A DNA stretch of 64,000 nt from assembly GCA_950097015.1 (NCBI GenBank), contig CATNEN010000038.1, positions 12,400,001-12,464,000 of the forward strand, in the 5' to 3' direction. Below the pieces are notes generated by a model, which was not told where the DNA came from, did no database searches, and worked only from the letters and a program-made list of their open reading frames with translations. Within the stretch, counting starts at the first letter, position 1. Every line of letters starts with the position of its first letter. This stretch comes from Macrostomum hystrix (Eukaryota; Animalia; Platyhelminthes). Below are positions 11,948-57,932 of this stretch, piece after piece. The position numbers were made by a program, and so were the translations under genes.

Positions 11948-14900
11948 ATGTTTAGCAACAACCTGACGGTCAATCCCTGCCTGGTGCACCTGATGCAGCT
12001 ACGGCGCCACCCGGTAAACGCTCTCTACCTGTACTATCAGTGTCGCAATGAGACCAATTACACCAGCGCCTTCACCGAGCTGCGCACCTCCTGGGAGCGC
12101 CTGCTGGACCGTGAGCTGCCTTGGCTGGTCGGCCTGCTGCTGACCTCCGGCTTCCTCGCCCTGCTGGGCGCCATGGGCAACGGCCTGGTAATCGTCCGCG
12201 CCTGTCGTCGCAACGGACGGCGGCTCGGCGGTCGCGAAAGGTGCCCACGGCGACGCCAGCTGTTCGTGCTGAACCTGGCCCTGTCCGACTTTGTCCTGTG
12301 CACAGTGACGCAGCCTGTGAATGCCCTGCGGCTGCTGCAGGACCACGTCAGCTGGCCACTGGGTACTGCTGTCTGCAAGCTGGCAAATTGGCTGACTGGC
12401 CTCAACCTGTTTGTCTCCACCTTCTCCATAACTGCAATCGCTCTTGATCGGTTCAGAGTGAGTGCAAACTAATATCAATAATAATATTGATGATTGCAGG
12501 AGGACTGCGGGCAATCCACATCATTCAGGTGACACTGGACCTGCAGCCAGTGAGGATTCGATTCCGCCACAAACACACAACACACACTCATATCGTACCC
12601 AGGCAAACACTCACACAGGTGTGTACATCTGCCCTGACTTTCTCATCGTTACGCAGTGTACACTCCAAGCCTTCTCTCCACGGCTGCATCCTAAGTTAAT
12701 GTGGCCTCGCTGCGGAATCGAGCTTAGGGACCTTGGCATGAGAGGCAAGCGCGTTAACCGCTCGGCCACTGAACCTCCCCCGAGTGACTGTTTAAACCGC
12801 ATGTGTTAGAATTCTAGCAAGAAAATTGGAATCTGTTTCAACTTGTACGAGCGGCCCAGGCGGCCCAACAAGGCTAGGTGGAATTCTCTCTTTCACGTGA
12901 GTATATTTACTATAGTCTTATTTTTAGCGCTAACTGGGTTGTCCAGTTGATGGATGCCGGGATACAGGATAAAGGATATTTTTACAACCGGGCAGCTACC
13001 GCATACTGGGACAGTCATGCTTTGCAAACAAGCCGGCACATCCTCTGCCGACTAGAAGGGAAAATATACGGGTCAAGCTGCCATAAAAAATCCCATCTTA
13101 TTAACCTGCAGTAGCGGCCGATGTTTACGGCCAAAAAGGGATAAAAACTGATCCCTTTTCTGACCGCACAGCCTGTGTGTGACAGCTCGCGCCTCACCCT
13201 AACAATCTCTCTCCCCTTTTTCCCATTCTTCCCCCCGTGCGGTGTGAATTCGGTAGCCTCAGCTAGCAAACCATTCCAAAACTGATAAGCCGACTTCAGC
13301 CCAGCTTTATTGGGCTGGGGATTAATCTCGCGCTTCTGTGTTGAAGCCACATCACTGTGAAAACCAATTCAGTTCAATGCAATCAAGCCTATAGAGCGTG
13401 AGGCTGTGGTATAAATTTTAGCTCAACACGCAGCGATCGTCTTCAGGTGTCGATTAATTATCCTCACAGCAGTTAGGGTCAGGCCTTGAGTGGGAAAGAA
13501 ACTCGGGAATTAATGAGGCTTCCAAGACGTATTTCTATGCCAATCCTAGAAATTTCTAGATAAATGCTTTATTTTCTCAAGCAAGTAGGCATTATGATAA
13601 TAATTGCAGACGGGCAGCGGGCAATGGCAAGGAATTTGGTGACTCCTAGACACACTCACACGGATACCGTACGCAGACATACGCTTGCACAGGGTGTGTA
13701 GCTCGTACATCTGCCCTTAGACTTCCTCGTAGTCAGGCTGTGTACACTTATATTGTGCCCAGTAGCGCCCTCAAGGGCCCGTAAATTGCACAGCAAGCCC
13801 AAAATAAATGTCGCCTCGCCGCGGAATCGAGCTCACGGACCTTGGCGCGAGAGGCAAACGCCCTAACCGCTCTGCCACCCCTCCCCCAGTAAGTAGGCCA
13901 TAGTGTTATTTAGACGCCCTGTGAGTTGTGTTTTTATGCACTAATTTCAGGTCAAAACACAAAACTCAGCCTGTGTTTTCATCTTTGTTGAAGTTTGACT
14001 GCATTTCTAGTCAATTTGCATCCGTCCATGGCCCAGGCTGCAGGAAAAACATTTCTCGGTTTGTTTTTCACCTTTTCTACTCGTGATTAAAAAGAATGCC
14101 AAAGGATTCAGTAGCTGGCTTCCCAAGTTCAACAAGATTTACGGTTTATAATTGCCCCCTCCCTGTCTACCTGTCTCGCGCGGAAACCAAATTTTCTGCA
14201 AAACTGCTCAAAGTAAAGAAATGATATTTTCCAGGACCACTGCTGACCTTTGCAGTTGATTAGAAAGGAGAGAAATTTATTCAATGCAACTCTACGCAGT
14301 CATTACTAATGATGTATAAGACTGAATTACCGAGTTTATGTGACAAAATCATATATCAAAAAGTCTGCAAATGATTGTCAATCAGGACACTTCTGTCAGA
14401 GACGATTTATCCTTACGTAATTTCCTCGTGCTTGGCGGCCAGGCCTACACATTCCACGGTCTAAACAGCGGTACACAAGCTTTTAGAAGCGCATTCAAAT
14501 CGCTGGGGCTGTGTAGCTACAGCTACTACGGACTAGGGGCCACCACCAAAACTTTTTATTCCCCGGAAAATAATCTGAAGCTTCGAACTCCAGACCTCTC
14601 GGCTCACCACTAGACCAGACCGCCTACGAACTCCCTTTCTCGCAATCGCCCACAGACAATCGTGCGCCCGGACCAGCAGAGCTTCGGCAGCAGCGGCAGT
14701 GGCACCAGCCGTAAGCAGCCCCTGTCCGTGCCGGTCATCTGGCTGGCCGCGGCCGGCCTCGCCTCGCCGCTGCTTTGGTTCGCCAGCGTCGCCGAGAACA
14801 AAGCGCTGGCCACTAGCCAGGCCCAGCAGCAGCTGCAGTGGCACCAGCTGGATCATCGGATGCTGCTCTGCGGCGAGGCCGTTAGCGATCGCGCTGGTCG

Positions 14901-15345
14901 AGCCGCGAAGCTAGCCTACAGTGTGGCAACGCTGGTGTTGCAGTACCTGATCCCCCTCACCACGGTGGTCGCTGCCTACTGTCGCATTCACGCCCGACTC
15001 CGCCTGAAGCTGCGCTACCGCCGGGAGAGCAGCCAGCAGTCGTCGGCCTACCAGATGCAGCGCCTGATGCTCGAGCAGAAACGCAATCGGCGAAGCAACT
15101 GCCGCCTGACGGCTATCGCGAGCTTCTTCGCTCTGGCCTGGCTGCCGTTGGCGTTGTTCAACATCGCAAATGACCTCCAGCTGTGGCTGCCCTCGACTCG
15201 TTTCATCAGCCGCCACCAGGTGCCAATCCAGATTGTGCAAAGCGCCTCCCTGCTGCTGATTTTGGCCTCGGCCTGCGCTAATCCGCTACTTTACGGACTT
15301 CTCAGCGTGAGGCAGTGGTCGCTGCGGCGCAACAACAGCCAGCAA

Positions 15346-15397
<52 letters not shown>

Positions 15398-16126
15398 CTC
15401 CCGAGAGGTCAGCGTAATATTAATATCCATCTTATTTTGCGAAGCACTAACATAAGCACAAATACAAAACACAAAAGTGCTCATACCGTACAGAAGCACA
15501 CAACTCACACGGGCTGTACATCTTACTCAATGTGTACAATTGCATGAAAAGTCCACGAGCCTTCTCTCCGCGGCTGGCCCTAAGTGAAATTGCAGAAAGA
15601 TTCGACTAAAACTTTATTAGTAATAAACTATGAGTAATTGTGTTGCTTCCTATCTTGGTAACCGTATCAATTAAGGACTGCTGCAGTAATCCTACTAGCT
15701 GGCTATAAATAGCTAACTACTTGGCAATTAAACTAGCCATTTAGGTCATAGAACCATAGAGCTAGCCTCTTACTATTTCGCATCCTCAGAGGTCCTGCAG
15801 GGGCCACTGGATTAAGCACTGCTCGAACTCAACAACCAGTTCAGCCGCCGTCGCCGCACTCACGTCCTACAATCTGCTGTTCCGTGACCCAATCCAACGG
15901 CTTCCGTAGTACAGGTGCCACACGAGGGGCGAGGGGCTATTTTCAACGACGGTCAACTCTACGGAGCCGTTCTGACGAAGTATTCATCGAGGATGAAGAG
16001 CATGACGACGGAGTAGTTGAGACTGCTGCAATAAACATGCTGCCGCTGAGGAAGTCATCGCTTCACCTCGCCTGGTACCATCCAGACGTCACACTGTGGA
16101 TAGATGATGATTATGACGAATGCTGA
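11948..16126 (+). CDS. Rhodopsin-like (class A) neuropeptide GPCR, NPY/NPF/PrRP-receptor-like, 3 exons, ~532 aa
   Basis: Exons 11948-12457, 14656-15407 and 15790-16126, GT-AG and frame-consistent. TM1 GN, TM2 NLALSD, ECL1 WPLG..CK, TM3 VSTFSITAIALDRF, TM5 LQYLIPL, TM6 FALAWLP, TM7 ANPLLYG. The LQYxxP and VSTFSI segments are typical of NPY/NPF-type receptors. Exon 3 is less certain than exons 1-2. Confidence 0.88.
12490..12785 (-). mobile_element. SINE family B copy in GPCR intron 1
   Basis: Reverse complement of the family B head (ggttcagtggccgagcggttaacgcgcttgcctctc...ctcgattccgc) through to the tail. Confidence 0.8.
13600..13890 (-). mobile_element. SINE family B copy in GPCR intron 1
   Basis: cgcggaatcgagctcacggaccttggcgcgagaggcaaacgccctaaccgctctgccacc matches the other B copies. 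Confidence 0.78.
14430..14625 (-). mobile_element. tRNA-derived SINE, family C (degenerate)
   Basis: Minus strand reads ggcggtctggtctagtggtgag...gaggtctggagttcgaa (A and B boxes); tcgaactccagacctctc recurs at ~25808. Confidence 0.5.
15340..15396 (+). repeat. Coding CAG/CAA microsatellite, polyQ(19), in the GPCR C-tail
   Basis: cag caa caa followed by 16 uninterrupted cag codons. Confidence 0.95.
15470..15590 (-). mobile_element. SINE family B fragment, GPCR intron 2
   Basis: gtacatct...tgtacaattgcatga...agccttctctccgcggctg core. Confidence 0.6.
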
Positions 16127-25632: not shown

Positions 25633-26141
25633 TTGGCAGCTAACTTCATTTTCACTTTCGGTACCACTGAAATGCCTCTATAGCTACATGGATTGTGATC
25701 TGTTTACAGTCGGCATAAAAGGCTTGAGATATCGCTGACACCAAACCCATGCTTCAAGCTCAAGAACACAATTTTTCCTCTGGATTGGGACTTAGAGAAC
25801 GACAGATCGAACTCCAGACCTCTCTGTCTTAAACTTAAAGTAACCAGGCTGCATAGATTGGTTGACTTAAAGATATGTGAATCAAAAAATATCTCAAGAC
25901 TTACAAGTTTCTAAAAAAATTTAAGGGCACTTGTTTATTTGTGGGCATCAACAGCCAAACTTCAAAACGGTGCAGTGTAGGTTAGTGTTGCGAGTAAATT
26001 ACTCTCCCGCTGCAAAACAGCAATACTATAGTCTCCATTTATCAACAAATAGTCAGTTTATTACGCCAGCTTTAATAGTTTAGTCTTGAAGTCAGTGATA
26101 TAAGCTATAAGCACCGAAAGCAAAGGCTGCTGCTCCTTTGA

Positions 26142-26614
26142 TCAGCCGGTCCTCCTGCTCAGCGACTCCTGGCCAGTAGCCAGGCGCTGCAAGGCTTGCT
26201 GAATCTCCACCATGCCGTTGACTTGGGCCTGCATCTCGTTGCCCATGGACTGCAGCACTTTGCCTAGGTGCTTGAGACCATTGCTAGTCGACATGCCCTG
26301 CACCTGGTTGGCCTGGTCGCGCAGATAGCTTAAGTCGGTGCGGAGGGGCCGGAAGCTGGGCGTCCACTTCTCCTGGAGGTCGAGGCTCGACTGTGGAAGG
26401 CACCGATTCGTTATAAGGTCAATGATTGGCGAGTGTAAATACCACTGGAGCAACTCAACCCACATTTACTTACATCGTCAAGTTCTTCATTCACGGCCTC
26501 CAGGTCGCTAGGCTCGGAGTTCAGAATTGAATCTTCGGCGACTTGACTGCCGGCACTGACCGCTCCTAGGAGCAGCAGAAACAGAGCAAGGGACTGGAGC
26601 GGGCTGGCTTGCAT
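26142..26614 (-). CDS. Small secreted prepro-protein A (signal peptide, acidic propiece, helical domain), 2 exons, 129 aa, unknown family
   Basis: Exon 1 26614-26474 (MQASPLQSLALFLLLLGAVSA + acidic GSQVAEDSILNSEPSDLEAVNEELDD), 83-nt phase-0 intron gtaagt...ccacag, exon 2 26390-26142 (SSLDLQEKWTPSFRPL...LSRRTG*). GC3-rich codons. Confidence 0.82.
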
Positions 26615-26831
26615 GCTGTGGCTTAGCGTCTATGGCCGTGACTGCGCAATGAGACTTTGTTCTCATGAAAAAGACGGATTTGCAGCGACACAAGGTGAAA
26701 TAAACTGTTTTGACTGTTAGGCGTAACTCAAATCCAGGACTCGATCAGCTAATAAATAGAGATCACTAAGCCATGGCTCCGCTAAAGTGTTCTCAAACAC
26801 TACCTGATTAGCTTAGAGTCACGAGCCAGCA
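26615..26831. promoter_or_regulatory. Putative bidirectional promoter between the two secreted-protein genes
   Basis: Only 217 bp separate two divergent ATGs; AT-rich TATA-like taataaata at ~26750. Inferred from geometry only. Confidence 0.55.
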
Positions 26832-27678
26832 ATGAAACTGAGACAACCGCAGCTGCTGGCCGTGCTGCTGCTCTTAGTAGCAGCATGCGTCGTCCACCTG
26901 GGCGGGGCGGCTGTTGCTGAGCCGTCCGCCGTGCACGCTGAGCAGTCACTGGTCCCGGAGTCGTCTCAAGTTGAGGAGAACCTTCTCGAGTCGGCTGCCA
27001 GCGATCCGGAGGAAGAGAATGACTATTTAGAGGCCATGGAGATGTTCGAGAATGAGGCAGCCGCTGTGAGTTGTTTTTTTTCTGGCAATGGTTTCTGTCC
27101 CGCATATAGGAAGTAAGCAAGTCTGATCAGGCAGCAATGCTTTTACAGGTCGCATGCATTTGCATCTCCATTGTTTGCAGAATGGCCTGACCGCCGAGGA
27201 GATCCAGCAGAAGTGGCGGTTCCGCGGTCCCCGGTTCAGTCTGCCGAGAATCCGCCTGCCGAGGATCCGCCTGCCGAGGATCCGCCTGCCGAGGATCCGC
27301 CTGCCGAGGATCCGCCTGCCCAGGTTCCGCCTGCCGAGGTTCCGCCTGCGCCTGCCGAAAATTCGGGTCCGGCTTGATCTACGAAAGCTTGCCAGGAATT
27401 TGAACGTCTTTCGACACCTGAAGAAATTCCGCGATATGGTTAAGAATCTAATCAACAGACCCAATGAGGACTCGATGCTCAAGCCGTACATGCTAGAGTT
27501 GGCCATGGCCGTGTCGGAGATGATTCTCAACCTTGAAGCTAGCTCGAAGCAAATCATTGAGGCGCAGCAGATGGTGCGCGAATTGGCCAAAAACTATGAA
27601 ATCCTACGGAGTGCAGTTCAGATGGGACAGCCTTTTGTGGCGGGGGGCATTGCGTGTGGATTGGACAGAATTTACTAA
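26832..27678 (+). CDS. Secreted prepro-protein B with Arg/Pro-rich (LPRIR)n cationic repeat, 2 exons, 243 aa; candidate antimicrobial peptide precursor
   Basis: Exon 1 26832-27065 (signal [29 protein letters not shown] + Glu-rich propiece), 115-nt phase-0 intron gtgagt...ttgcag, exon 2 27181-27678 ([20 protein letters not shown](LPRIR)5(LPRFR)2LRLPKIRVR... then a helical domain). Confidence 0.85.
27241..27345 (+). repeat. Coding 15-bp tandem repeat x7 (ctgccgaggatccgc)
   Basis: Seven in-frame units encoding LPRIR x5 and LPRFR x2. Confidence 0.95.
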
Positions 27679-30102
27679 ACGCGCTCCGCAGCCTAAAACA
27701 TCAAATTTTCACTGTTATTCTCTGATACACGGTACAGGCAAATCGGTGCCACCAATAAGACGGCAGTATAGGCCATATCGATCAGCTGTCAATTAATTAT
27801 TAATCAAGTTAAAACACAAAATGGTATTTTTCTTAACGGAAATTAATAAGCAGAAACTTGGAAACGGTGACTTATAAAATATTTACCAAGTCTTGGTACA
27901 AAGCTCTCGCGAATTAGTTTTTCATCAATAGTGCAAGTAGCTACTTGTATCAGCTGCTGCTGCTCATTTTTCCCTGTAAATTATATATTAAAAGTGAAGT
28001 CTGTGTAGATGCCTCATCAGTCAATTGGAGCAAGTCGAATTCATTCCGGTCGGTAAGGATTCGCCAAGTAGATTCTCGTTTTTAAATCCCTCTGCCGACA
28101 TGCTTCGACTAGGACACGCCAAAGATTCTTCCGATAGCAGGGCCCTTTCCAGTGGTCGTAGACATGCTAATTCTTTTACGAATTCTTCTAATTCTACTTC
28201 TCGTACTTCAGTTGGTAGCAAGTAGTAGTGGATTAAGGGTATGCGTCTGACAACATTTTTGTTCCGTTGTGTCTCCCGGTAATTAATCAATATGTGGGTA
28301 AGCGTAAAGCCGATAAAGGGCGGATGGTTAGTGCATGGTTCGATTTTGAAGCAAGAGGGGGCAACGTCTCAAATCTGAAGACAAGCTTCAGAAATAAACA
28401 CATGGAATAAACACCTGACAAAAACTCCTGAAATAAACGTTAGAGTTGCTGCCATCATGGTCAGAACGGTTGGTTGTCTCGAAAGACTTCTCTTGCCTTA
28501 AACCTGTAAATTGAAAATAATAAACACCTGAATTCGAGACTTGAAGACAAGTTCTGTGAAAAAATTGTTAGTATTTATAGCCGTTCGAGCTCTGCCATTG
28601 GCTGAGGCCCTTCAAGCGCACTCGATAGCTGGAAACATTGACGCGGGTGGTATCGCCGTGGGCGTGCCAAAACTGCTGTGGAAAAACCGTGGAAATACCG
28701 GCCACAGATCTCGAATACTGACACCCTAAGAAGAAACCAACTTAAGACATATTAACTAAATTTCTAGGAGAGACTATAAACCAGCGACAGCGGCAATGCT
28801 AGCTAGTCAAGGAGTGGAAGCTAGATGCTATGCCTTGCAAATAGCGACTCACTGCAGTTTTATCAGACAATTAAGTCCTGGAAGCTTCGGTGCGTTCTCT
28901 TTTGGGTGTGGCCTATGCTCTGCATTCTCCAGTGTACAGCGCTGTCAAGGCAACGCACACGCACTAGGAAACACCAAAGCAGAATTCCAGGCCCCTTAAA
29001 AAATGACATATTCTCTCTCCTATGCAAAATGTTTCTTTCATTTCTCTCTCCCACGGCACAGTGAAATGGGTAGCATTGCAAAGACAAAAGAGAATGTAAA
29101 AAATGTGTACACTATATGTACGCAATTGATGGTAGCCAAAAATTTTTTTTAAGGAGTACATAGAAAGTTCCCCTTTCTCACCTTTGGAAATGTACTTTCG
29201 TAGGTGCATCTCGCAAGCGAATGTACGCCACCCTGAGCTAGCCAGGTGCATATCCCAGGCGCATATCGATCGCTCTTCGTAGCTCTAGATAAACAGAGTT
29301 TTATTCGTAAAGCTATCTCATTTAATTTTTTTTTCGCAGCCAGAGTGACCTCTTTTGGTGTAAGAAATCCGTAAGTTCTTTATATTCCTAGATAGTTTGC
29401 GTCAACCAAATTGTCAAATAAGTGTATAGCAGATTAATGGAGGATAGCGCAGTGCTGCCTACCACATAGTGTTATTTTAAGTGTTATTATAAGTGTTAAC
29501 TTGGCTCGTACATGTACAAGACTTGTACGGATTTAATTCAACGGCTTATTATAGTATCTGAGCCTTCCTTTCATTCTTAGAAAATTCGCAAAGCTGTTCA
29601 GATATGATTGGGAGTGTTTTTAACGCGCTTCATTTAAATACGAGTATGTTGCTTTTGCAGCAGACTGTTTTTATGGCTGGTGTTTCTTGCTTCTTAGCAG
29701 CCATGAAGGGAACCGATGCTGTGCTGGCAAATATACTGAACTCGTTATATAGCTTCGTGGCTGCGAGACTGTCTGCTGATGCATATGTAAACTCGGCGCA
29801 GTGTTCTTGTTTAATTAGCACTCTTGCATCCTAATGAAACCATTTAACGGCATTAGTAAAGGGGGGAAGAAGGGGAAAGGGGACATTAGTTCTCTGCTTG
29901 GGGGCATTGGTGGCCTACTGGGGGGAATATCGGTTCTGTGTTTAAGCTAGGGGGTCATTAGTTCTATGCTGAAGGGGGCATTGGGAGAAATTTTGTCTGA
30001 TGTGTTTGTTTGCCCATAGATGTTACACCGGAGTGGAATGTGTTTGGGACACCCTATGGGGGGCGATGTGGCTAGTCTATGCAAATAATTGACTACACCT
30101 GT

Positions 30103-30689: not shown

Positions 30690-33600
30690 TCACTGGTCCC
30701 ATCAGTCCCTTCAGCACAAGCTCAGTGCGTGACCACCTGGCCGTACCACTTGGCGGTGCGCGAAGTCTGGCACTGCACCGCAGTTCAGCGCCGTTTTCCG
30801 TAGCAGCCTCCGGACCATCAGTCAGCGCCTGGTCACCCGCTTGCGGCTGCGGCTGCCGAGGTGGCTCGGCCTCAGGCACCGTTGCTCGTGCGCCTTCAGT
30901 CGCGGCCAAAGGCAGGCAGACGCTCGTGTGCCACCTCGAACCGTCCTCTAGCATGACGATCGTCGGGCTGATGATGTCGCTGACACGCAGAGGCTGTGAC
31001 ATGTGGCTCTGTAGTTTGCCTCGCATTCTCGGTGATCGGACTTGCACCATGTCGCCCACTCTGAATTGGCGCGGCGGTTTCCGAGTCCTGTTAAGCCGCT
31101 CGAACTGTCACCGCTGCTTGGCCTTGATTTGGTCCTCCAGCGGGTGCTCCTTGGTCGGTGGCCTCGGCTGCAGTGTCCACAGCGGCGTGGTGATCTTGCG
31201 CCCGAGCATCAGCTCCGCTGGAGTCACTCCCGTCATCGCGTGGGGTGTCGACCGGTACGCCCAGAGGATTGACTGCACTGCCTCCAGAAACGAGTAGCCG
31301 TCCCGCAGGTGACTCTTCAGGCCCTCTTTGACAACTCGGTTCAGGCGCTCAACTCCAGAGTTGCCTTGCGGATGGTAGAACGGGGTCTGCCGATGTGCGA
31401 TCCCATGTGCCTTCAGGAAGTCCCTGAACTCCTGGGACACAAACTGCGGTCCGCCGTCCGTCGTGATCACTCTCGGGATGCCCCAGCGAGAGAACAGCGC
31501 CTTGAGACTCCCGATGATGGTCGTTGAAGTCGCAGAGGACAAACAGATCAGCTCTGGCCACTTTGAATGTAGGTCGTGCACTCCGAGGATGAATCGGCAG
31601 TTCTGCGGGGCGCCCTCGTGCAGCTCCCCGAACAGGTCGATCTGCAGCTCAGTCCACGGCTCCTTTGGCCACTTGGTCGCAGTCAGGATCGTCCGATGCG
31701 GCTTGAAGCTCTTCTCTCTCATGACGCACGCAGAACAGTTGCCGACGAACCTTTCGATGTCGCTGTCCATTTTTGGCCACCACACAGTGTCCCGGCACTG
31801 ATGCTTGGTCCTGCTGACTCCCCGGTGACCTTGGTGCGCCAAGTCGAGTACTCGTTGACGAAGACTTTCTGGCACCACAGCGCGAGCACCCATCGCCAGG
31901 CACCTGCCGTTGCTCCAGACAGATAGCTCGTTTCTGACCTTCCAGTAGGGCAGCAGGCGCTCGTCGAGTCTCCGCTTGTCCGGCCATACAGCTACAGTGA
32001 AGTCAACGACAGGTGCGAGCAGCTCGTCCGATGCCGTTGCCTCGGCGAGTTCCTCCTCGGTGACCACGCTCAGCGCCTCGGCTAGCAGTACTCGCTGCAC
32101 CTTCAAGTCGTCAGTAGCATCATCTTCCGTCGGCCTTTCCGTGCCGTCGCAGCGGGACAGGAAGTCGGGCACAATGTTCTTTGCACCTGGGACGTACTTG
32201 ACAGTGAAGTCATAGCTAAGTAGACGATCCGCCCAACGGTGCAGTCTGAGTGGCCGGTGCCCGCTTCCCGATGCTGACAGCAGGGTGGTGAGAGCCTGAT
32301 GGTCCGTATGGAGCTCGAAGCGTCGACCGTAGAGGAAGAAGTTCCAGCGTTCGCAGGCGAAGATGCAGGCCAAAGCCTCACGCTCACTGGCTGAGTAGCG
32401 GCGCTCTGTCTCACTCAGCGTCCGGCTGGCGAAAGCTACAGGCCGCCACCGATTGGCCGCGTCCTACTGAAGGAGAACCGCACCGAGAGCTGTTGCCGAG
32501 CTGTCGCAGCTGATGATGATCGGCTGGTCTGGATCAAAGAACTTCAGGCAGGGCGGGTTGCTTACACCTGCCTTCAGCTGCTCGAATGCCTTCTGGCACT
32601 CGCTCGTCCATTGCCACGGCTCCTCCTTCCTGAGCAGCTTCATGAGTGGCTCCGCCGTACTCGAGAGGTTGGGAATGAAGTTTCCAAAGTACTTCACAAC
32701 GCCCAGGAATGCAGACACCTCCTTGGTGTTCGTCGGCGGCTGCACCTTCTTGATGGCTTGCACGTGTGATCGCAGTGGTCTGACTCCGGATGCACTCAGC
32801 TCGTAGCCCAGGAAGTCAATTTTTTCCTGCCTCCAAGCGCACTTGGCCGGGTTGATGGTCACGTTGTGCGTCAACAACGCTTGCAACACCATGAGCAGCT
32901 GCTTATCGTGCTCATCCTTGGAAGTTGCATGCACCACGATGTCATCCATGAAGTGCACTGCGCCTCTGATGCCGCCGAGTATCTTGGCGAGGACCTTCTG
33001 GAATGCGGCTGGTGCGCTACAGAGACCGAAGCAGACTCTCCGGTAGCGGTACAGGCCTCGCTCAGTCACGAATGTTGTTAGATTCCTGCAGTCTTCAGCC
33101 AGATCCAGCTGCAGGTAGGATGAGTTGAGGTCCAGTTTCGAGAAGACCCGCGAACTTTCAAACTCGGCTGAGAGCTCCTCGAAGGTTGGCAGCGGGTACC
33201 TGTCCGGTATGATGCTCTTGTTCGGACCTCTCAGGTCGTTGCAGATTCGAATCGCGCTGTTGGCCTTCGGAACCACAACCAGGTTCGAAACCCAGTCCGA
33301 AGAGTCGACCTCCTCAATGATGCCTTGTTGCAGCAGCTTGTCGATCTCCTTATGCACCGCGTCACGCAGACTAAGCGGCACTCTGCGCAGCTGCTCAGCA
33401 GTCGGCTGCACCGCCGGGTTCACTCGCGGCCTGTGCTGAAATCCCTTGATGTGCCCGAGTCCTCTGGTCAGCTGGTCAAACCGGCTCGGGATCCAGTCAG
33501 GCAGGGCTCTGTCACCGGCCGTCTGCACCCGTTCACCGTCTGCCGTAACGATCTGCAGTCCCAGCTGATCCATGAGATCGCAGCCCAGGATGTCGGAGCC

Positions 33601-34813
33601 CGTCTTGACCACGCTGATGTTGCAGTAGGGCACGACCTTTTCCTTGAGCTGCACGGACACCAGAACGTCGCCGAGCACTTGGATTTTGCTGCCGTTGAAC
33701 GCAACCAGCTTCCGAGATGACGCGTGCAGCGGCACCTTGGACAAGAGCCTCCCGTAGGTTTCCTTAGTGATGATGCACACCCGGGAGCCGGAATCCACGA
33801 GCAGCTTGACAGGCCGTCCGTTCAGCAGCACCTCACAGTACTTGCTGGCTGCCACGGCCGTTTTCACTGTGCAGACAGAGTAGTCGTCGTCAAGCTGTCG
33901 CACCTGGCCTCCACTCCTGCAGACCCTGGCGAAATGCCCCAGCTTCCCGCAGGCCTTGCATTCCTTGCCTTTTGCCGGGCAGGTCTGTCCACGCTGATGC
34001 GCTCCCTTGCCGCAGTTGACACAGTTCCGGCCGGAGTCGGAGACCGGCCTTGGTGTCTCCTGCCGCTTTGCTGTCGCCTTGCCTTTCCAGCTATCAGGCC
34101 GTCGACTGTTGACGTTCTGGACCCCCTGTGCGATACCGGAGTCTGCGCGGTTGCCACCCTTTAAGGCCTGGGCTTCGAGCAATCCGGTCTCCAGCCGTTC
34201 GGCGAGCTGAACGGCGGTTTCCAGGGTCAGCTTCGGCTCCATCAACAGTCGCTCACGGATGTGGTTGCTGAGCACCTTCTCGATGAGCTGATCCCTCAGC
34301 ATCTCTTCCTGGAAAGTCTTGAAGTCGCAGTTGGCTGCCAGGCTCCGCAGTGCGGCGATGAAGTCGCTGATTTTCTCGCCAGGCCGCTGAGCTCTCTGCC
34401 GGAACCGGTGCCGTTCGGCCACGACGTTGACCTTCGGCCCGAAATGCTTGTCCAGCAGCTGCAGAGTACCTGTCTCATAATTACACCACGGTTTTCGGCT
34501 TTTCTCTTTCGTCCACCGGCTGAATCGACATGAAGATGTTCTGACCCTCTGCACCCAGGCAGTGGATGAGCAGGGCCTGTCGTCTCGGCTCGGGCAGGTC
34601 GATGGCTCCCGATGCTAGCAGGTAGTTGCTGAACATCGCCTTCCACCGAGTCCAGTCGATCAGCGGCGGTCCAGCAGCTGACAGAAACGGCTGCGGCGGC
34701 GAGATATTGACACTCATTCTGCTGGCACAATCTCTGCTTGGTGGTAGGGCTGCACTTTGCTGGGATTCTCTATGTGAATCGCCCAAGCCATCTGCACCCT
34801 CTGTGTCGCTCAT
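30690..34813 (-). pseudogene. Disrupted gag-pol polyprotein of the Gypsy element
   Basis: Twin knuckles CVNCGKGAH..C / CKACGKLGHFARVC, protease LVDSGS, RT FMDD, RNase H DSS..ERRYSASEREALA, integrase H..H..C..C, DLFG, TDGGPQF and ERLNR. Frameshift near 34490; in-frame TAG at 32464-32466; TGA at 31108-31110. Confidence 0.92.
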
Positions 34814-40296: not shown

Positions 40297-42577
40297 GACT
40301 GATGGTAAGCAGTGCTTACCAAGGCCTAATTTTACTTCCTGCCGGCTTGAGTAGATAGAATTCTATGGTTAAATTGATATTATCGGTTCCTGCCTGCAGT
40401 GGTAAGCACAGCTTACCGTGAATATTCTAGATTTTTTTCTGACAAGCATAAATTTTAATTTGTACATTCTTAATTATGTGTTGTTTGTACATCTCCTTTA
40501 TAGCTTTTAGTTCAAACATTCTATTTTATTCAAGAAGGCTCTGATAAATTTGAATTCCAATATCTTAACTTTCTCGTAGTATTGTAAAAATAACTAAAGA
40601 ACAAAGAAGAGCATCGAAACAGCCGATACATCTGTCCAATCTAACTTACCAGCGCATACAGAGGGTACGACTGGTACACTATGCAGAAACTATAACTAGC
40701 AAAACTAGAATAAATAAATAATAGTCATTAACAAATTTAAGCTAAAGACAAGAGGCAAAACTGAAAACTTAAGTCAGTTTGAGTGTTAAGCTGGTCCATT
40801 CTGTCGATACTTCAACGCTGCGAATGCCAACGTTGGAAGCAATCGAACAAACAAAGTCCCGGGCATCCTGGACATCGGCTGCAGAAATAAATTGTGCGCC
40901 GGGACCTGGCAGAACTGTAGCAAATTCTGCACCTTTTCGTAGGTCTGGGCTGGGCAGGACGACCTGGGATTTTCTCCGGAAAATGCTGCTCAACGACTGC
41001 AACTGAGCGCAGCATGGAAGCCGGTCGCTTCCTGCCATTTCCAGTTCGCTCTACTAACTCGCGGATGCTGGCTTCGAGATATTTGATGAAGGTATTCTGG
41101 CCACCACACTTGGAGTACAGAACCCAAGCGTTGCGCACCATTTGAAGGCACATATGCAAGCCCAGCTTGTGGAACCATTTTGTTGTTTTTCTGCCGGCGT
41201 CATAAGGCTGCAGTCTAGCTTGTCCACACCACCCATGCAGCGATTGTAAGTTAAGACACTGCGGCTCTTCTGCACTGCCACATGTTGTCCAGCTCGATTG
41301 ATCTTGACTTTCTCGGCCTTTGACGCAACGTCCTTCGTGTCCAGCAAATACACGGTCTTGACTCCACTCTGCTTCCTCTCGACAGCCTTCACAATTAGAA
41401 CTCGTCCCTTCCTCACGAAAGCTACATTATTCGGAACCACCACAGCCTGCCGAAGCTGAGCCGGAACTCCTCGGTCTGGCCTCACGGTGCCCGTCAGGAA
41501 CGTTGAATGGTCAATAAGGAACTGGGATAACCTGTATGATGTAAACCAGGTGTCGGTAAATATTCTGTACCCTTGGTCCAGAATGTCATTGGCCAGCTCA
41601 GCTACGATTCGCTCGCTGAGAGAAAGATTTACACAGTCCTGTGTGGAGCCGAACTTCCGATTTTCTTCTGGAGTTGAGTGCACTATGAAATTGAAGAGAT
41701 AAGCAGACTTGGACTCACACAGACAGTACATCTTCATTCCGGACTTGGCCCGCTTTGTTGGAATGTACTGTTTAAAACGAAGTCGCCCCTTAAACAGTAT
41801 CAAGGACTCGTCAATGCTCACTTCACACTCAGGCCTGTAGTTGTTCTTGCAATAAGCTTGCAGCATATTCATAAATGGACGAATCTTGAGTAGTGGATCT
41901 GCGCTTGCTTCTTCCCTGCTGTCGTAGAAGCGCAGAAATGTCAGCAGCTGCTTGAATCTATCGCGAGCTAACGCCTCGGGCTTCTGAAAGTATGGCATGC
42001 AGTGAAATTCATCTGTGCTCCAGTAGTCATGTAGCTCGGACTTTTTGTTCAGGCCCATGTTCTTCAGCCGCTTCGCCATCTGCGAACTCCTGTCCTTCCT
42101 CGCCTTCAGGCTCTTCCATGATTGGAGGATCGCCATTCAGTGCGTCTTCGATGCCAACCTCCTCACCAGGCTCCTCGTCTATTGTTAAGTAGGAGTCGAG
42201 GCTCACTTCACTGTCTGAGGTCATGTATTCGATCCCAGAGAGAGAAGCCATGTACTGCAGGTTTTCAGTGAGTACGCTCGTACTGAGAAATTTAGTGAGA
42301 AAAGACTAACAAACAAGATGGTCAGAATATTATTGTAAGAAAGCTTGTCCTACTGTAAAGGGGACTTGCTGCGCACAGATTTCTATGGTAAGCAGCGCAT
42401 ACCAAGCAGGCAGCAAGTGAGACTGCTTTACTGGCTAAAGGCAGTAGTGCTGCTCATTTCCTTCCCGTCTAGTGCATCAGTTTAAGCCATGCTTGATTAG
42501 TAAGCCTAGCCGGCAGGAATGGGAGTGACATGCTATGCCAGAAAATATCTATGGTAAGCACTGCTTACCAAGCAGTC
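40297..42577 (-). mobile_element. piggyBac-like (PGBD4-type) DNA transposon, defective
   Basis: Transposase remnant flanked by imperfect inverted ends gactga-tggtaagcagtgcttacca / tggtaagcactgcttacca-agcagtc, plus internal copies of the palindrome. No TTAA at these ends. Confidence 0.8.
40812..42251 (-). pseudogene. piggyBac transposase (DDE_Tnp_1_7-type with C-terminal Cys-rich domain), frameshifted and internally deleted
   Basis: Acidic N-terminus, MGL...YWST, IDESLILFKGRLRFKQYIPTK, DTWFTS, GTVR, YNRCMGGVDKLD, and CRD RCRIC...YFCSRC..GLC..CFQRWH. Frame breaks near 42060 and 41205. Confidence 0.9.
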
Positions 42578-45545: not shown

Positions 45546-46370
45546 TGGGCCTCGGGCTTTGATATTTGCTGTATAAATACCATCAAAGCCATCAAACTCA
45601 TTTTAATTTGACCAACGGTTTTACAGTAGCTTGGCAATTCCAAAGTCCAATTCCACTGGAATATGCATTCAAACCTAACAACCTATAGTCACAGTGGGTC
45701 ACAATTTTGGTTCGAACATGAAGTCTATATTGACACATACCATTGCCATTTTGAACACGGACTATTTTTTATTTAAAATTTTCTTTTAGCGCCACACCCT
45801 GAAATTTCTTCGAGATTGACTTAATCTCACCTAATCTAAAGCTTCTAATCTAAAGCCTTAGCCTTAGCAACTAGCAATGTAAGTCGTTGACAATTCTAGA
45901 AATTAGCGCAATTATCCCACAGGCCGCCAAAGTCAAACCCCGAGTCGCACATTTTGGCACGTTGACGAAATTTGACCAATTTTTGGTGAGGCGAAAAATG
46001 TATGTTAATTGCGTAACACAGCCGAAACTGACACATATGGATAATAATAAGAGCTAGATTTAAGAAATTTGCATATTATTATCGGTAAGCCTCAATGTTG
46101 ATGATGCAACTTGCCCAAGGCACTATAGTCCTATTGTTACCTGCGACTGTGTTGCGTAACTTAACAATGAACAATGAACTTTGCCCCCATTTGTAAATTG
46201 CAAGGAGGGGACGGTACAATGGGTTCTTTGTACGAACGAATTCGAATTCAAGAACGAATTCGATCTATTAAATTGGCTTTGTCAGAAATAAAGATAAACA
46301 ATTTTATGATTAGGTGTCGAAATTTGCTCTCTACCCCTTTCTCACCCTTTCCCCTTCCCATTCAGTTTTC

Positions 46371-46746
46371 CCCTTCTCAAACTGTCTATTCCCTTCTCAC
46401 ACTGTCTTATCACTTCTCAAAAGGTCTATTCCCTTCTCACACTGTCTCTTCCCTTCTCAAACTGTCTATTCCCTTCTCACACTGTCTCTTCCCTTCTCAA
46501 ACTGTCTCTCCCCTTCTCAAACTGTCTCTTCCGTTCTCAAACTGTCTCTTCCGTTCTCAAACTGTCTCTTCCGTTCTCAAACTGTCTCTCCCCTTCTCAA
46601 ACTGTCTCTTCCCTTCTCAAACTGTCTCTCCCCTTCTCACATTGTCTCTTCCCTTCTCAAACTGTCTCTCCCCTTCTCAAACTGTCTCTTCCCTTCTCAA
46701 ACTGTCTCTCCCCTTCTCAAACTGTCTCTGCCCTTCTCAAACTCTC
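46371..46746. repeat. 20-bp minisatellite (cccttctcaaactgtctctt)n
   Basis: About 18 visible units. Confidence 0.95.
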
Positions 46747-47046
46747 TTAAGTGTTTCTTTTGCTCTCCAGCCCAAAGCCAGCATTCACCTGCTAACAAGA
46801 AGGCTAGGTGTATCGGAGGAAATCTCACCTAGCTTACTCATATCTTCTCAGGCTTGAGCCTGGGGCTTTTTTGCTCCCGGAAGCATCAAAGGGCCTTCTT
46901 AGCTGCTGCCTTACTTAGTCGGCAATGTGAGTTCGCATTTATGCCTGACTGGGTCGCATCATATCGTAAATGGAGTGTTTTCGAAATGAAAATCAAGTAA
47001 TTAAAGATATAGCTTCGAATATTTAAACCAGTATTTGTATTGTATC

Positions 47047-56504: not shown

Positions 56505-57932
56505 TTAGTCGAAGCCATTTGCCAAGCTGACGACAAGAATAGTTGCGAGGATCCACGGATGAGGCCGAAGCTGCTGGGCACCGCGCGGCTCAGCTGGAGC
56601 CCTAGCCGAGGACCTGACGGACGTGCAGTTGGAGTCAGCGCAGTCAGACAGCTGCCTGGCGTAGTACTGACCACCGTCGCTCAGGCTGAACAGAAGATCG
56701 CCGCTTCTCAGCCTGGCCTGCACATTTTGCACCTCCTGGTCCAGGTCCACGGATCCCGAATAGTTTCTGTTCAGATTGAACAATCGTTGGTCTCCAAGCA
56801 GCAGCTGGAATGTGATGGAGCTGTCGCCTTTGACACTCATAGGGATCCATTCGATGCCGCGCTCCCTCCAAGCCATGCGGTCAGATAGGGCGGCAGCGAA
56901 GTCGACAGCAACCTGGCCCGGGTCCAATCCAACTGCCCTGCGGCCCCTGCCGAACGCTTTGAATGCATCAACTGTAAACTCAATAACTTTCTTTCCAGCT
57001 TGGTACGTTGCATTGATAGGATCAGCAACGCAGCCAACAAAAAAATCGAATTTACAATGCCATGCAACTTCAAAGAATGACTTCCAGGTTCCGTGAAACA
57101 CTGTTAGATCACGTTCGTAAAAGGCACCCCGGATCGTGAACATAATTTTAAAAATATCCCAGCATCTGTTTTTAATGACGTCGCAGATTGACGGCTGTCC
57201 CAAAGCCGGGGCCAAGTAGCATTGTGTGTGGTGTCTGATAGCCATTTCCTTCACCTCTTGGCAGGAAGGCTGGTAGAAATCACGCATCAGAGGCACCAGC
57301 GACACTTGGAGGCACTTGCGAACGGCATCGACCCATCGGCGAGTCAGATCACTGAACCATAAATAGTTGTTATTGTACAGCTCGCAGTACTTCTTGCCGA
57401 AAGCCAGTGCGTAGCCAGTCTCAGGACCACAGGCCACTTTTCGCTCCAGACAGTCGGTGTACCAGGAGCAGTCCTCGCCTGTTGGGCTGTAGCAGCGGGG
57501 CGGCAGTGTTGTGCCAACGGAGCCCGGAGTTGGTGTGACGGCTGGGCGGCTCGGATCGCAGGAACAATCGGTTGTAACGGTGCCGAAATTCAAGTCGTGG
57601 AATTCTATCATGCATTGGTAATAGCAGTAGGTAGCGGTACGATCCTCGCATCTGAGCAGGTGGTGAGATGTGGTTGGCTGCAGGTTGTCAGTATGAGTAA
57701 AAAATTAGCTATTTTAACAGAACTGGACTCACATATGTCGGCCACCCGATTTAGTTTGAATGTACGCGTTGGTCAGGCAGGTCGCGTACTGCCAGCCGTT
57801 GTATCTCGGAATGCTAATGCAGTTATAGGCGTTAACGGGGCCCTTCGAAGCTGAGCATGAGGCGTGGACTAACGGCAGGATGGCAGCCGCAGCTGCGATG
57901 CAGATCAAGAAAAATCTGCATAAACGAAGCAT
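56505..57932 (-). CDS. Secreted, possibly GPI-anchored Cys-rich protein with a stanniocalcin-like domain, 2 exons, ~448 aa
   Basis: Exon 57932-57733 (signal peptide), phase-2 intron gtgagt...ctcag, exon 57651-56505. Core CSWY..CLE...CG...GYAL.FGKKYC....FS....W...VRKCLQ..L....CQEV...A..HH..CY....C; furin-like RGRR; hydrophobic C-terminus. Gene model is solid; family call is moderate. Confidence 0.78.

Follow-up and report, generated by a model that had tools for sequence, protein, structure and literature searches.

Two divergent genes of the flatworm Macrostomum hystrix, probable distant paralogues for putative secreted proteins, one with an arginine-rich pentapeptide repeat

Background

What are the two small genes that stand head-to-head in a stretch of the Macrostomum hystrix genome, and are they related to each other or to any known family? 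The stretch analysed here, called the window below, comprises 64,000 nucleotides (GenBank assembly GCA_950097015.1, contig CATNEN010000038.1, positions 12,400,001 to 12,464,000 of the forward strand), and all coordinates are positions within it. Gene A (minus strand) and gene B (plus strand) occupy positions 26,142 to 27,678 and are transcribed away from each other, with 217 bp between their ATG codons. An original prediction, made from the sequence alone, described them as paralogous precursors of secreted proteins and as a possible two-component secretory or antimicrobial module. Our analysis shows that both genes are transcribed and spliced, identifies a clear orthologue of gene B in Macrostomum lignano, and suggests that A and B are probably distant paralogues. 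On balance, and with limited assurance, we favour the view that they belong to a family found only in Macrostomum, in which the B product would be a secreted polycation that is masked by its own propiece and acts on polyanions outside the cell.

Gene structures and transcripts

The transcript evidence comes from contigs of one public study with four runs (X1 to X4) under two organism labels, placed on positions 25700-28200. The runs are presumed, not stated, to be RNA. Their contigs behave as spliced RNA, because the introns, the spacer at 26663-26810 and the outer flanks are covered by none of them. The features of the locus are as follows (UTR, untranslated region).

25928..26141, minus strand: 3' UTR of gene A, minimum extent (X1 record 1 to 25986, X3 record 10 to 25928)
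about 25939-25934, minus strand: AATAAA in the 3' UTR of gene A (offset 206 of the minus-strand read)
26142..26390, minus strand: gene A exon 2, 82 codons (26390..26145) and TGA, from translation, with the RNA junction at 26390
26391..26473, minus strand: gene A intron, 83 nt, phase 0, GTAAGT..CACAG, skipped in RNA contigs
26474..26614, minus strand: coding part of gene A exon 1, 47 codons, from translation
26615..26662, minus strand: 5' UTR of gene A, minimum extent (contigs end at 26658-26662)
26663..26810, no strand: spacer between the A and B transcripts, presumed divergent promoter, zero contig coverage
26811..26831, plus strand: 5' UTR of gene B, minimum extent (X2 record 6 begins at 26811)
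26832..27065, plus strand: coding part of gene B exon 1, 78 codons, from translation
27066..27180, plus strand: gene B intron, 115 nt, phase 0, GTGAGT..TTGCAG, skipped in RNA contigs
27181..27678, plus strand: gene B exon 2, 165 codons (27181..27675) and TAA in the assembly, from translation
27241..27349, plus strand: 15-nt tandem array encoding (LPRIR)5(LPRFR)2, 7.3 copies
27625..27627, plus strand: gene B codon, GGA (Gly) in the assembly and TGA (stop) in RNA (X1 and X2 contigs)
27679..27783, plus strand: 3' UTR of gene B, minimum extent (X1 record 4 to 27783, X2 record 8 to 27769)

Both genes are transcribed and spliced. The intron of gene A is exactly skipped by contigs of X1, X2 and X4, and that of gene B by contigs of X1 and X2, in which the junction runs from 27065 to 27183 with 'AG' between; this is the junction as predicted, with A>G (Asn>Ser) at 27182. 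The transcripts extend at least over 25928-26662 for gene A and 26811-27783 for gene B, and contigs of the two genes occur together in two runs only, X1 and X2. The gene models, coordinates, phase-0 introns and 217 bp spacing that had been predicted are hence all present. In the spacer, AT-rich boxes resembling TATA elements may be read by eye at 26700-26706 (for A) and 26753-26760 (for B). A scan of the spacer for bacterial-type promoters and terminators returned nothing, although this kind of scan does not apply to an animal. A separate RNA contig of low depth lies at 27876-28053 (X2 record 9), about 100 bp past the end of the gene B transcript and unconnected to it.

The exons of both genes were searched, folded and scored separately, and the totals of 129 residues for A and 243 for B are sums of exon lengths. 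Signal peptides were called from the layout of the n-, h- and c-regions by eye, together with Kyte-Doolittle hydropathy. The predicted A protein starts with a signal-peptide-like segment of about 22 residues (10-mer maximum 2.9) and the B protein with one of about 29 residues (10-mer maximum 3.5), each followed by small residues. Both continue with an acidic propiece, whose net charge is -9 for A and -15 for B. Exon 2 of gene A opens directly after the phase-0 intron with DLQEKW, followed by a short basic FRPLR segment and by helices at exon residues 20-29 and, as a long one, 35-81, as predicted by AlphaFold 2 (AF2) from the single sequence (predicted local distance difference test, pLDDT, 79). 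Its residues 10-82 carry a net charge of +3 (isoelectric point, pI, 10.2). Exon 2 of gene B contains, in order, EIQQKW, an Arg/Pro repeat, a cationic amphipathic helix with the LNVFRHLKK block, and a near-neutral tail, for which single-sequence AF2 of the exon predicts helix at low confidence and with rough positions only (pLDDT 55). The acidic propieces and the two KW motifs noted in the original prediction are thereby confirmed by charge count and sequence, respectively, and its C-terminal helices are also predicted by AF2 in both tails. The mature parts of A and B are without cysteine, except for a single one in the assembly-specific tail of gene B.

The repeat region of gene B reads RFRGPRFS(LPRIR)5(LPRFR)2LRLPKIR and of its 49 residues 18 are Arg and 1 is Lys; residues 13-92 of the exon have a net charge of +27. 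Repeat number varies, as run X1 has one 15-nt unit fewer (15 nt left out at 27250). The stop codon varies as well: position 27625 is T (G>T) at all depth in both X1 and X2, and the resulting TGA form is 17 codons shorter, ending in ...SAVQM at the same point as the M. lignano protein described below. With this variant, the A and B proteins both end 5-6 residues past the aligned helix. The 17-residue tail of the assembly therefore stems either from a stop loss specific to the strain or from an assembly variant, and is no feature of the family. X1 and X2 also differ from the assembly at 27634 (T>A), and X2 alone lacks 1 nt near 27642, within or next to a G-run. Both differences fall 3' of the TGA variant and would hence belong to its 3' UTR, where such changes are to be expected; in the frame of the assembly, the deletion would shift the tail.

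An orthologue of gene B in Macrostomum lignano

A HMMER search with gene B residues 62-165 against 1.84 billion representatives gave a single match (E 7.1e-9), PAA74498.1, which is BOX15_Mlig026096g1, a partial hypothetical protein of M. lignano. By BLASTP, exon 2 of gene B matches it at 4e-10 with 49% identity (44-49% in the best block and tail), and the B propiece aligns to its N-terminal part with a Smith-Waterman (SW) score of 71, against a shuffle mean of 38. PAA74498.1 shares with gene B a signal-peptide-like start, an acidic propiece with the blocks VEENLLE and LEAxE, QLQQKW, (LPRIR)n, LNVFRHLKK and a helical tail; it differs in having more repeat units, nine or so LPRIR/LRRIR. From the significant match and the same order of parts, gene B is best placed with Mlig026096-like Macrostomum proteins. 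In the B lineage, the expansion of LPRIR would then have preceded the split of M. hystrix and M. lignano. That the cationic insert occurs in B alone of the two genes was correctly predicted, and it is kept in the M. lignano protein.

As far as these searches reach, the family is found only in Macrostomum and is undescribed. Pfam gave only sub-threshold chance matches for the four exon translations and PAA74498.1; the PDB gave no significant match (sequence searches E >= 0.049, Foldseek E >= 5.8); the ESM Atlas returned at most 0.84, or nothing, and hence no usable lead; and word-indexed protein searches returned no match for exon 2 of either gene or for B residues 62-165. The repeat string and BOX15_Mlig026096g1 are absent from all searchable papers. 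The statement that the family could not be recognised was therefore right. The family search proposed along with it found its one protein in M. lignano but no further member in the M. hystrix genome, where A and B are each single-copy. The best other genome match of gene A is an (MQSLSNR)n tandem repeat, and gene B otherwise matches only satellite-like repeats, which read LPxI[KR] or the like in translation. Such satellite-like short tandem arrays, whose translations mimic Arg/Pro or MQSLSNR repeats, yield spurious protein matches to A and B, and occur for instance on contig C30 at ~477.9-478.2 kb, on C39 at ~6.12-6.13 Mb (more than 10 kb long) and on C3 at ~11.867 Mb.

Two known kinds of precursor were considered and rejected. 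Cathelicidins have an N-terminal cathelin-like domain with four cysteines; neither exon 1 has a Pfam match that would indicate a cathelin domain, and neither propiece contains a cysteine. Precursors of neuropeptides carry their peptides between dibasic sites, usually with a Gly for amidation (G-K/R-K/R). A flatworm neuropeptide precursor was rejected because neither A nor B has a G[KR][KR] motif or units that are flanked by dibasic sites or amidated; the sole dibasic site in gene A is an RR 3 residues before the end.

Relationship of gene A and gene B

The original prediction offered a gapless alignment of the C-terminal helical segments as proof of an inverted duplication. This alignment is also the optimal SW alignment of A and B (raw score 38, 10/39 identities), and it exceeds plain shuffles (p 0.008-0.019). 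Most of its score arises because the heptad pattern is the same in both segments. Judged from these comparisons of sequence, the similarity of A and B exceeds chance only by way of PAA74498.1 as an intermediate.

The M. lignano protein matches not only gene B but also exon 2 of gene A (BLASTP E 0.001, 76 residues, from FRPL to the C-terminus), which is closer to it than to gene B itself. Upstream of the matched part, LQEKW in gene A and LQQKW in PAA74498.1 stand in the same order. Aligned to the tail of PAA74498.1, gene A reaches an SW score of 51, higher than all 5,000 plain shuffles (p < 2e-4), and shuffles that preserve the hydrophobic/polar pattern give p 0.0045, with a reversed control of 29. 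Moreover, a two-sequence hidden Markov model (HMM) built from the B tails gives gene A 9.6 bits, for which the conservative null yields p 0.003. Because gene A matches the orthologue of gene B, a distant paralogy of A and B is likely. At the DNA level, inverted matches are found in the core of the signal peptide (26562-78 and 26865-81) and in the QxKW codons (26364-77 and 27203-16; 13/14 bases), and the parts follow one another alike in both genes: propiece, phase-0 intron, LQxKW, FRxL, helix and C-terminus. We therefore regard A and B as probably distant paralogues that were formed by inverted duplication.

The alternative is that A and B are unrelated orphan genes for secreted proteins which by chance share a divergent promoter, and that their likeness reflects nothing beyond the composition of signal peptides, acidic stretches and amphipathic helices. 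Several results weigh for this alternative and against paralogy. Neither exon pair of A and B is aligned by BLASTP at E <= 100. Under shuffles that preserve the hydrophobic/polar pattern the direct alignment falls to p 0.04-0.06, and a reversed sequence scores nearly as high (35 vs 38), so the shuffle check does not bear out the alignment as first presented. The propiece of gene A compares with PAA74498.1 at chance level (p 0.58), and hhalign gives gene A an E of 0.0053 but a probability of only 6.8%, the profile being thin. The support for paralogy is moderate, at p about 0.003-0.005 after several comparisons. However, under the same conservative null the match of gene A to PAA74498.1 is significant (reversed 29 vs 51), in agreement with the HMM and BLASTP results, and chance would also have to account for the identical order of parts and the equal bases at the motif. 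Independent origin is hence unlikely in our view. The inverted duplication stands as likely through the M. lignano protein, although the direct alignment is not significant on its own.

Possible functions of the gene pair

The explanation that we find somewhat better than even combines this ancestry with a function: A and B would be head-to-head distant paralogues of a Macrostomum-only family, in which a secreted B polycation, masked by its propiece, acts on polyanions outside the cell. Both products would enter the secretory pathway, and the spacer of ~150 bp probably holds regulatory DNA common to the two genes. In gene B the basic segment would have grown by the 15-nt tandem repeat into the (LPRIR)n polycation, which together with the next helix makes up the charge of +27, while gene A, the sister copy, would have stayed unexpanded and encode a helical, weakly basic protein. 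The acidic propiece of gene B would mask the cationic stretch during storage, and the freed or unmasked product would bind extracellular polyanions, for which microbial envelopes are the first guess (a host-defence-like role) and polysaccharides of mucus or adhesive the second. An anionic propiece that balances a polycation is the layout of many cationic effector precursors.

Some points speak against so complete an explanation. Its functional half is drawn from the layout of charges. The signal peptides are judged from eye and hydropathy only, and the n-region of the signal-like segment in gene A has no positive charge. The RNA support consists of contigs from a single study, which give no levels, strand or co-expression. 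Moreover, the repeat of gene B departs from what is typical of proline-rich antimicrobial peptides (PrAMPs), in which proline is high (about a quarter or more) and PRP or PP motifs occur; the repeat contains 9 Pro in 49 residues (18%) and neither PRP nor PP.

Among the more specific functions, we rank a host-defence-like role first, and reproductive secretion and a charge-based role in adhesion or mucus are named besides it; the present data do not separate them. In its full form, which we put forward tentatively, the first of these holds that the B family is a new class of flatworm-specific host-defence or polyanion-binding polycations, with (LPRIR)n held inactive by its own propiece and released on secretion, and with A as a further effector or a modulator, under joint control of the promoter that the two genes share. 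The closest layout known to us is that of precursors of Pro/Arg-rich antimicrobial peptides (Bac5, Bac7, PR-39 and the apidaecin type), which are likewise secreted, have an anionic pro-region before an Arg-rich, Pro-containing, repetitive cationic stretch, and contain the LPR triplet. The strong, Arg-based positive charge of PrAMPs is also present in gene B. Gene B differs from these precursors in lacking a cathelin domain and cysteines, and in that its cationic stretch is internal and followed by ~100 helical residues. The literature that we searched contains no Macrostomum antimicrobial peptide of this kind.

Slightly less probable is that A and B are reproductive secretion proteins (prostate, seminal fluid or a different genital gland) that pass to the partner at mating, the target of the polycation being either the partner or sperm. 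Both proteins are small, of secreted type, restricted to the lineage and fast diverging, as is seen in the modest identity of gene B to M. lignano even in the best block, and repeat number and stop codon of gene B are polymorphic between close samples. This would agree with the rapid evolution of reproduction-related genes in Macrostomum, which is described in a published study (PMC7336406). On the other hand, BOX15_Mlig026096g1 is absent from the supplementary tables of that study and of two other M. lignano expression papers (PMC5816591 and PMC5946080), copies of which may be incomplete.

A structural or adhesive secretion, in which the Arg-rich repeat binds negatively charged glycans or surfaces and the helical tails oligomerise, appears rather improbable. 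It has a precedent in the same genus, as Macrostomum adheres by means of a secreted protein with extremely cationic Lys/Arg-rich regions, and polyanions disturb this adhesion (PMC6410801). Those regions of Mlig-ap1, for which binding of polyanions was proposed, resemble gene B in their extreme charge (+27 over 80 residues in gene B) and in being secreted, and the heptad-like helices of A and B would suit such a role (PMC6410801 for Mlig-ap1). However, Mlig-ap1 is a giant multidomain protein with vWD, C-type lectin and other domains, whereas gene B encodes ~240 residues in which Pfam finds no domain of Mlig-ap1 or Mlig-ap2, and is without sequence similarity to them.

Least probable is the two-component module of the original prediction, in which A and B hetero-oligomerise through their helical tails and A serves in granules as the partner of B or as its neutraliser. 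In its favour, the two genes lie side by side in divergent orientation, occur in the same two runs and have helices in the same heptad register. Against it, A is unlikely to neutralise a polycation because its own product is weakly basic, the -15 propiece of gene B is the nearer candidate for that task, and contigs are not suited to show co-expression. A complex prediction for B residues 62-165 with A residues 10-82 (score 0.13, mark 0.34) speaks neither for nor against binding. Processing between K and W of the shared motif, which had been suggested for both precursors, finds no support, and cleavage at this site fits no convertase rule known to us. The KWRR of the M. lignano protein and the RxxR motifs in A and B come closer to such rules, and we note them as a lead on processing only.

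Other features of the window

Outside the gene pair, the window contains several open frames with recognisable domains.

14662-15417, plus strand: open frame matching the C-terminal two thirds of a rhodopsin-family seven-transmembrane receptor (E 2e-13), probably one exon of a G-protein-coupled receptor
31108-34554, minus strand: pol of a long terminal repeat (LTR) retrotransposon, in two adjacent open frames, with aspartyl protease, reverse transcriptase, RNase H, and integrase zinc-binding and core domains
41054-42136, minus strand: open frame of 360 residues with a piggyBac-type transposase domain (DDE_Tnp_1_7, E 6e-52)

Two further open frames, of 368 residues at 56505-57611 (minus strand) and of 227 residues at 46174-46857 (plus strand), have no Pfam match. 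GC content is raised at 30-34 kb.

Conclusions

As it stands, the locus can be annotated with good support as two orphan genes that are expressed and belong to a small, genus-restricted family, and this leaves current views unchanged. The annotation is useful for the genomes of M. hystrix and M. lignano, and the genes are suitable candidates for in situ hybridisation and RNA interference (RNAi). Macrostomum is a transgenic flatworm model that is tractable by RNAi, and a role of these genes is hence testable. If the favoured explanation is true, Macrostomum would possess a gene-encoded cationic effector whose pentapeptide repeat is unusual, and if the B proteins do form a new class of polycations, this would be the first family of gene-encoded cationic effector peptides described for the genus. 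The pair would then be a case in which the expansion of a 15-nt repeat made a polycation out of one copy of a duplicated secreted-protein gene, while the sister copy stayed plain.

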